Origin: Camelus ferus | Taxonomy: Eukaryota | DNA: 64,000 bases | Direction of reading: 5' to 3' | NCBI RefSeq assembly: GCF_009834535.1 | Contig: NC_045714.1 | Location: 15,066,001-15,130,000 of the forward strand | In this document: positions 27,301 to 30,300 of the stretch, in pieces | Layout of the letters: each line of letters begins with the position of its first letter | How positions within the stretch are numbered: position 1 is the stretch's first letter | Program-made: the position numbers and the translations under genes | The notes under the pieces: model-generated | The model's database searches: none | Told to the model about the DNA's origin: nothing | Seen by the model: only the letters and a program-made list of their open reading frames with translations

Positions 27301-30300
27301 GCTCTGCAGCCCACTGCTGCCTTCCGCCCGCAGGGCCCTATTCCCACCCGTTGTCTGTCCTCACTTTTTTGCTGAGACACCTCAGAGCCCATGATGCCCT
27401 CAGGAGCAGCATGGAGCCCCTGCGTGCAATGCCACTTCCCGTTCTTGGGGCCTACAGCAGCGCCCCGCTTGGGGCAGTACTTTTGAGTTCTACAGAGCTG
27501 GGGTCAGATTCGGGCCTTTTGTTTTACTTTCTGGTGGGGTCCACACAGGCCCATGGGCTCCTTCCACGCAAGGCTCTGCCTACCAGCCTGGCGGGAGCCA
27601 GGCCCCAGCCCTTTAGGCAGGTTTGGTGTGGGGCCTGCTGCCGGGCTGGCTCCCCTGGGTGGGGTGGGGCTCTTGGCACGAGTGAGGATGCTGATGTGCC
27701 TGAGTGGGGAGCGTGGTGTTCCCAGCCTCGGATGAAAGCAGTTAAGGGCAACGGAGTTACATTCCAGAAGCCTGTGGAACACCCCAGATGCCACTGCCTT
27801 TGTCCACTTCCCTTGGCTTCTGGAAAGAAGCGGGCGGTGCTGTGGGGCCTGACACTGAGGAAGTGGCCTCTGAAGGCCAAGCTAGATGGCAGCTTGGGAA
27901 CCTGGGCCCTCCTATTTGGTTTCCACACTTCCTTGCGGCAGGCCTGGGGCCAGGGCTGGGGTGTGCCCCAGAAGTGGGGCAGAGGGAAATTTGAAGTCCC
28001 TGAGACATTGTGAAGTGTCCCGTGCTGTGAGCTGACCGTCCTCCAAGCCAGGTGCGGCCACCTCAGCTGCCCCTGCCTTGGGCATGGGGAACTTGGCAGA
28101 GGAGCCAAAGCCCCCAGTCCAGTGAGAGCGAGTCTGCACTTGGTCCCTTTGCTGCTCTTGGAGGGGCATGGCCATCTGAAGCTGAAGCTGGCTCCCCCTG
28201 GCTGCCTGCATCCTCCCTGGCAGCACCTGGCCACAGCTCGCTGTCCCTGCGGACCAGGAAGGGTCAGCACCACCTGACAGGGCCTGGGTGTGTGTCAGCA
28301 GGAGGTGCCGGCAGCCGGGACGGAGGTGGGCAGGGCCAAGCTGTTTATGGTGGCTGTGAAGCGGGCACTGAGCCAGGCCAGCTTCGACGCCTTCACCCGG
28401 GCTCTGTGGGACTACAAAGGCTCTGACGACCTTGCGGCCCTGACGGCGCGCCTCGGCCCTCTCTTTGCCGAGGACCCCAGGAAGCACGGCCTGCTCCGAG
28501 GTGCGCTGGCTGCAGAGGCTGCCTGCTTGAGGGGCCGTGCTGCAGCTGTGGGCGGGGGCCCCCGGGGGCCGTGGTTGACTTGCTCCCTAGAAGAGGTGCG
28601 AGTGGGGACCCCAGTCCCAGAGCCTGCAGCCCCCAGAACCCCAGGCCCAGACCCCTCCCCCCCACAGGCTTTTATCAGTTTGTGCGGCCCCACCACAAGC
28701 GGCAGTTCGAGGAGGTCTGCCTCCAGCTGACGGGCCAAGGCTGCAGCTACCCGCCCGAGTGCAGCCTTCCCCGGAGACTGGGGGCACAGCTGGCCCTGGA
28801 CCCCAGCGGTGAGTGGCGCCCTCCAACTTGGACCCTGAGGGTGGGGTGATGCCTGGCTCTTGGGGTGGGTCCTCACGTGGCGCATTTCCCAGTTCCTGAG
28901 GCTGGTGGGTTCTGGCAGGGTGACACCAGAACATGCACAGCCAGGGCCCAGACCTCCCAGAAGGGCCTGCACTTGGGGAGTCATTCACCTCGTCTCTTCC
29001 TGGCATGGGCCCTGCGCTTCCAGAGCTGCCCCTGTTAAGGAAGAGACCACAACTGGGCAGGGGCCCCCAGAATTGTCACCCTTCTGCCCTCTTGGGGACT
29101 TGGTGCCCACGGAGCATCCTCCTTCCTATCACGCCCCCCAGTCGTCGGGGACAGGAGTCAGGGTCCTCCTGCGGCAGTCTGTGGAGAGTTGTGTGGCCCG
29201 GTGTCCCCTCGGACAGACCAGACCTGCCCCCTCCCCAGGGGACACTTAGGATCCTCAGGAGCCAATTGGGTGGCTCATGGTGTCTCCACGTTACTTTAGG
29301 AAGGAGGGAGCCTGACCCCAAGCTGACCCTGTCCCAGGATGCAGCCGGGCAGCTGGACCCCAGCGAGCACCTGAACCAGGGCCGGCCGCACCTGGCTTCC
29401 AGGCCACCCTCTACAGGTACCTGGTCCCTGAAGAGGCTTCAGACCAGAGCCTGAGCAGCACTGAGGACTCCTGGGGGGAGGAGGCTCCCAAGGGCCACTC
29501 CGGCTCTGCACCCTCAGAATAAGGGAGGCCAGCGCATGTTCCCAGGAAGCCAAGTGGACCGAGAACTGTGGCCTTCCCGCCAGGAGACCCCGGCAGCCGT
29601 CCACAGGATGGGTCTGGAGCCTCTGGAACAAAGCAGCAGAGCCCGCCTGCCGTGAGCGCCTACCTGGCTGACGCCCGCAGGGCTCTGGGGGCCACGGGCC
29701 ACAGCCAGCTCCTGGCAGCACTGACCGCCTACAAGCGGGACTGACGACTTCGAGCAGGCGGCGGCTGTGGTGGCCGCCCTCACCACCGCGAAGACTGAGG
29801 ACCTGCCCCTGCTGCAGAGCAAGTGGCCCGGGCGGCCGGGCGGCCGGGCGGCCTGGGCAGGGCGGGCAGGCGGGCAGGCGGGGTAGCTGGGTTGGGCGGA
29901 GCCAGGCCTGAGCTGCGCTCCCTGCAGGGTTCGGCATGTTTGTGCGTCCGCACCACAAGCCGCGCTTCCGGCAGATGTGTGCAGACCTTAGCGGCCTGCC
30001 TGCCCTGGGCACCGGCACTGAGACCCCAGGACCCCAGGATGGGAGCCCTGCCGTGCCTCCTGACCTCGCCCATGGGGCTCCCAGTCCAGGTAAGGTGGCC
30101 AGCCTGGCTCTGCTGCCCTGTACCACCACCCCCACCCCTGTACCACTCAGCCCTGGCAGGGTGGGTAGCGGGCAGCAGAGAAGTGCCAGGCACCCCTCAG
30201 ACTTCTTCCCATCTCCAGGCCCCTCGCAGCCAGAGAGACCGGGGAAGACCCAGAGCAAGATCTCCTCCTTCCTTAGACAGAGGCCGGTGGGGGATGCAGG

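Follow-up and report, generated by a model that had tools for sequence, protein, structure and literature searches.

In the genome assembly of the wild Bactrian camel (Camelus ferus), the RTEL1 gene carries one base too many in exon 32, and its reading frame runs into a premature stop codon. The question raised by this locus is whether the animal makes a truncated RTEL1 or whether the extra base is a fault of the assembly. If true, the truncation would remove half of the second harmonin-homology domain (HHD2), the PIP box and the RING, and the wild Bactrian camel, or the sequenced animal, would be a naturally occurring hypomorph among large mammals, relevant to telomere and replication biology. 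An earlier note, made by reading the letters of the sequence, had described the frameshift, favoured a consensus indel error as its cause and proposed skipping of exon 32 as a means of rescue should the base be real.

Identification of RTEL1 and its domains

For location of the gene, horse and C. bactrianus RTEL1 were used in tblastn searches against the window (the whole stretch of 64,000 nucleotides analysed here), and the exon map was transferred from C. bactrianus. The coding span starts with the ATG at 3328 and ends with the normal TGA at 30771-30773 (3328-30773, plus strand; 36 coding blocks as mapped), and the gene is complete on this strand of the window. Pfam matches to DEAD_2, ARCH_RTEL1, Helicase_C_2 and HHD_RTEL1 all fall on one gene (NCBI gene call). 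Synteny is conserved, with a stathmin-family gene upstream and TNFRSF6B and an Arf-family gene (ARFRP1) downstream, as in the gene lists of C. bactrianus and C. dromedarius. A 52-aa piece upstream of the break matched the solved RTEL1 HHD2 structures 8ya8, 8p8h and 7wu8 (E ~1e-10). Domains, synteny and structure matches agree with the earlier assignment of the gene to RTEL1 and of the break to HHD2, upstream of the PIP box and RING. The break corresponds to about residue 42 of the 90-residue HHD2 chain of 8ya8 (camel residue 1092) and thus lies inside the second harmonin-like domain, where it had been placed before. Two Pfam HHD stretches could be found in the intact C. bactrianus protein, and one (the first) in the 1092-aa C. 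ferus model.

The PIP box after HHD2, of the pattern Qxx(L/M/I/V)xx(F/Y)(F/Y), binds PCNA, and the terminal C4C4 RING, found in long RTEL1 isoforms only, brings RTEL1 to telomeres via TRF2 (PMC11344278). Downstream of the break, the C. ferus exons are otherwise intact, including the PIP box, every RING cysteine and the last exon. Exon 33 (29928-30089, plus strand), which holds the end of HHD2 (Pfam HHD_RTEL1 profile positions 77-99), has the same length as in C. bactrianus. The PIP box QSKISSFL lies at 30251-30274 (plus strand) within exon 34 (30219-30353), and the last coding exon, compared with that of C. bactrianus, is intact at 30693-30773 (plus strand). Over the whole coding sequence, the C. 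ferus and C. bactrianus genes differ by three substitutions (two of the three private to C. ferus), by two inserted single bases and, at the exon 7/8 blocks, by a repeat-copy difference of 129 bp.

Two side observations were made on this gene. The 129-bp tandem unit (window 9316-9578; L002 8989-9380) contains the acceptor and start of an RTEL1 exon, GCTGTGCCCGTACTACCTCTCCCGG...; its copy number is 2.0 in the C. ferus assembly versus 3.0 in C. bactrianus. The alignment places the extra unit in the dromedary assemblies as well, and not in alpaca. Either the copy number really differs or the repeat has been collapsed. An antisense ORF of 449 codons was also seen on the minus strand (window 29296-30645), where it covers exons 31 to 35 of RTEL1. 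A single database match was obtained for it, at 39% identity, and the ORF most likely arises from the GC content of 65-69% and is not a gene.

A single extra base in exon 32

Exon 32 as assembled spans 29584-29818 on the plus strand and encodes a linker and the first part of HHD2; by direct reading, its acceptor AG is at 29582-29583. Its length is 235 nt, one base over, as had been noted from the sequence, and the orthologous exon of C. bactrianus and of the other camelids measures 234 nt. The frame entering from exon 31 reads ...AYKRD and then meets TGA at 29742-29744 (plus strand), and the frame beginning at 29743 continues the protein and runs on into exon 33. Removal of one base restores the frame, and the base in question could be identified as the T at 29742 (plus strand; CM020786.1 15,095,742), which gives CGGGAC-T-GACGAC in the window in place of CGGGAC-GACGAC in relatives. 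On all of these points, the earlier reading of the exon was borne out.

The exon ends at a GC-type splice donor, GCAAGT, at 29819-29824 (plus strand). The earlier note had called this donor weak, a view that the comparison does not support: the hexamer is identical in five of five camelid assemblies, and C. bactrianus uses the same GC donor in its full-length model. The genomic ORFs of two other mammals read LLQSKW into the intron, which is compatible with the same donor. Because the donor is conserved and fits a full-length model, its GC type is no sign of weak or optional splicing.

Comparison with other camelids and mammals

The locus was compared with assemblies of C. bactrianus (GCA_048773025.1), C. 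dromedarius (GCA_036321535.1 and GCA_000803125.3) and V. pacos (GCA_048564905.1); the comparison sequences all came from other species or assemblies, none from a second C. ferus individual. This check against other camelids, which had been suggested together with the original observation, found the T at 29742 in none of the four assemblies (three species), all of which read CGGGAC-GACGAC. Only one assembly thus has the T, and at this locus it differs from that of C. bactrianus by just 0.15% in substitutions.

Outside the camelids, the genomic ORFs of other mammals were uninterrupted across the site (AYKQDDDFEK, YKREDDFEK and AYKRDDDLEK), as was horse RTEL1 by tblastn. A camelid RTEL1 cluster was retrieved by a search with the full-length horse protein. 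Intact RTEL1 has 1277 aa in C. bactrianus and C. dromedarius and 1277-1303 aa in V. pacos; among the 15 members listed of the 28 in the cluster, none was a protein from an older C. ferus assembly. Searches of public run assemblies with the ORF piece upstream of the break, or with the antisense ORF, found no camelid contigs; the contigs returned were from other mammals only, with an intact reading.

A second inserted base in the RING exon

A further frameshift, not mentioned in the earlier note, was found 705 bp downstream of the T in the same coding sequence. Exon 35, which encodes the Cys ligands of the RING (30443-30547, plus strand), is 105 nt as assembled versus 104 nt in C. bactrianus and the other camelids. 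The difference is a second private inserted base, an A at 30447 (plus strand; CM020786.1 15,096,447), which is the fifth base of the exon and gives CAGCGGG-A-CTTGG versus CAGCGGG-CTTGG in the four other assemblies. When exon 35 is read in its own frame, from 30449, the RING sequence is kept. For an essential gene that is otherwise unharmed, two independent frameshifts are in keeping with technical error rather than with decay.

Excess of private insertions in the C. ferus assembly

Positions 1-40769 of the window were aligned with C. bactrianus and C. dromedarius, and each difference was polarised, so that all counts that follow refer to this sample of 40.8 kb only. Private to the C. ferus assembly are 17 insertions and 2 deletions of 1 bp, along with 24 substitutions. 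The corresponding numbers are 2, 1 and 30 for C. bactrianus, and 3, 2 and 254 for the dromedary branch. Relative to substitutions, the excess of insertions in C. ferus is significant against both C. bactrianus (Fisher p=9e-4) and the dromedary branch (p=7e-14), and the bias of insertions over deletions, 17 versus 2, has p=7e-4. At the ratio of the dromedary branch, 24 substitutions would be accompanied by ~0.3 private insertions, where 17 were seen.

These insertions lie at 10929, 11141, 14317, 16244, 17087, 23760, 29742, 30447, 30582, 31011, 31326, 32039, 32542, 32967, 35538, 37764 and 37790; their density is ~1 per 2.4 kb, with none within the first 10.9 kb of the window. Natural 1-bp insertions are mostly duplications of the adjacent base, and random inserted bases are typical of raw long-read error. 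In C. ferus, the inserted base is unlike both neighbours in 13 of the 17 private insertions, and the T at 29742 is itself non-templated. The private insertions strike coding and non-coding DNA alike: the coding share of RTEL1 is 13.9%, and 2 of the 9 intragenic insertions fall in the coding sequence, against 1.25 expected.

Failed polishing in GC-rich DNA was considered as a cause of these insertions and rejected. The insertion sites showed no significant enrichment in GC over random sites, which leaves the idea of polishing failure at high GC unsupported. The density is high for a polished assembly, and local GC content does not explain it.

The assembly record and its protein models

Positions 328-32744 of the window correspond to GCA_009834535.1 CM020786.1:15,066,328-15,098,744, with identity over all 32,417 bases. 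This record belongs to BCGSAC_Cfer_1.0, an assembly of the wild Bactrian camel (PMC8069558), which a secondary source describes as built from long reads and Hi-C (PMC9374506). Its contigs are far longer than those of Illumina-based camel assemblies. Truncation of predicted proteins by uncorrected PacBio indels is a recognised problem of camel assemblies (PMC7468183).

The RefSeq protein of C. ferus, XP_032317487.1, is 1092 aa long and ends exactly at the assembled stop. RefSeq also holds C. ferus RTEL1 isoforms X2 and X3, of 906 and 905 aa (P0183 and P0180), the tails of which resemble an out-of-frame reading of the exon at window ~26893-27021; near the end of this exon, at 26981, there is a C. 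ferus-private substitution (A versus G). These tails may reflect alternative splicing or another error.

Origin of the extra base

With four other camelid assemblies lacking the T, and with many similar stray insertions in the same assembly, the T at 29742 is very probably a consensus insertion error of the long-read-based BCGSAC_Cfer_1.0 and not a mutation of the animal. The earlier note had come to the same preference, which now gains support from the absence of the base in the other camelids and from the excess of private, non-templated insertions. The base would be an uncorrected long-read error left after short-read polishing, and the 1092-aa protein in RefSeq and UniProt a by-product of annotating it. 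The real exon 32 of C. ferus is then most likely 234 nt, as in every other camelid, and the real RTEL1 is most likely a full-length protein of ~1277 aa in which the two harmonin-homology domains, the PIP box and the C4C4 RING are all retained.

Next in standing is a real germline +1 insertion, either in the individual sequenced or as a fixed variant of C. ferus, with truncation at residue 1092. The deposited assembly contains the T, the RefSeq annotation adopted it, and the sequences compared were all from other species or assemblies. Wild camels form a small, inbred population in which deleterious alleles can drift, a point in favour of a real allele. Set against this are the numbers of private insertions: with 17 seen for ~0.3 expected, the prior probability that any given one is real is ~2%, even without allowing for selection on an essential gene. 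The inserted base is, moreover, of the non-templated kind, and a second frameshift follows 705 bp downstream, yet the downstream exons are otherwise perfectly conserved. A real truncation would also be consequential, which adds to the doubt that a living, breeding animal carries it. We regard a germline insertion as unlikely, with a small probability.

Far less probable still is a real T that is rescued by skipping of exon 32 via its GC donor, with exon 31 (G) joined to exon 33 (GG). The arithmetic of this proposal, put forward in the earlier note, is right: a junction of 29416 with 29928 is in frame and reads through the PIP box. The protein, however, is not restored, because the second insertion (A, 30447) breaks the frame again in exon 35, where a stop follows and the RING is still lost. 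Skipping would also delete 78 residues of folded HHD2, and the donor, which is the same across the five camelid assemblies, agrees with a full-length model in C. bactrianus. Among the isoforms listed, those of C. ferus in RefSeq (1092, 906 and 905 aa) all end before the exons downstream of exon 32. Programmed +1 ribosomal frameshifting at GAC-UGA-C, of the antizyme type with a zero-frame stop at the shift site, has a superficial resemblance in its favour, as the UGA lies at the very point where slipping by +1 would bring back the conserved frame, but the extra base occurs in no other camelid or mammal examined, the shift site is not conserved, and a recoding signal missing from C. bactrianus, only 0.15% different at this locus, makes this reading, the least probable of all, not credible.

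A consensus error thus stays the preferred explanation. The flagged truncation is no biological feature; it is an ordinary stray base in a draft assembly.

Consequences for the annotation of this genome

The error has already entered public protein databases, as 'RTEL1 isoform X1' of C. ferus with 1092 aa (XP_032317487.1, UniRef100_A0A8B8RHY3). For this reason, screens for gene loss or adaptation that use this assembly could report a false truncation. With ~1 insertion per 2.4 kb and coding sequence not spared, frameshifts and pseudogenes of this genome, including TNFRSF6B, need to be checked first against C. bactrianus or C. dromedarius. Polarising private indels against substitutions by means of sister assemblies is a cheap general test for such cases.

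Observations were also made on the two genes downstream of RTEL1. TNFRSF6B-like exons lie at 32058-33023. In the TNFRSF6B region (window 31588-33035), there are private events at 32039, 32161, 32542 and 32967, namely three insertions of one base each and a deletion of 11 bp, seen in the C. ferus assembly only. At the same position, C. bactrianus, C. dromedarius and alpaca have an intact TNFRSF6B product of 287-289 aa (NCBI call), and GTFSASSSSSEQCQLHRNCTALG is in a single frame in C. bactrianus TNFRSF6B. A reading of C. ferus TNFRSF6B as a unitary pseudogene may be a product of assembly errors. The Arf-family gene further downstream (ARFRP1 by position) is annotated with 226 aa in C. bactrianus versus 201 aa in C. 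dromedarius (L006 41670-46675 versus L007 41798-46807).

Comparison with known systems

In humans, C-terminal RTEL1 truncations and RING variants are found in telomere biology disorders (Hoyeraal-Hreidarsson syndrome), and the modules lost are the same as in the camel model, the PCNA-binding PIP box and the TRF2-binding C4C4 RING (PMC11344278). Unlike these human disease variants, the camel truncation is most likely absent from the animal. RTEL1 of C. bactrianus (XP_074203765.1) and of C. dromedarius (XP_031289267.2) is the same gene with the same synteny and exon structure, to which the C. ferus assembly adds a base in each of exons 32 and 35. The private insertions also resemble uncorrected consensus indels of the PacBio type, being likewise private to one assembly, biased toward insertion, mostly non-templated and blind to coding potential.
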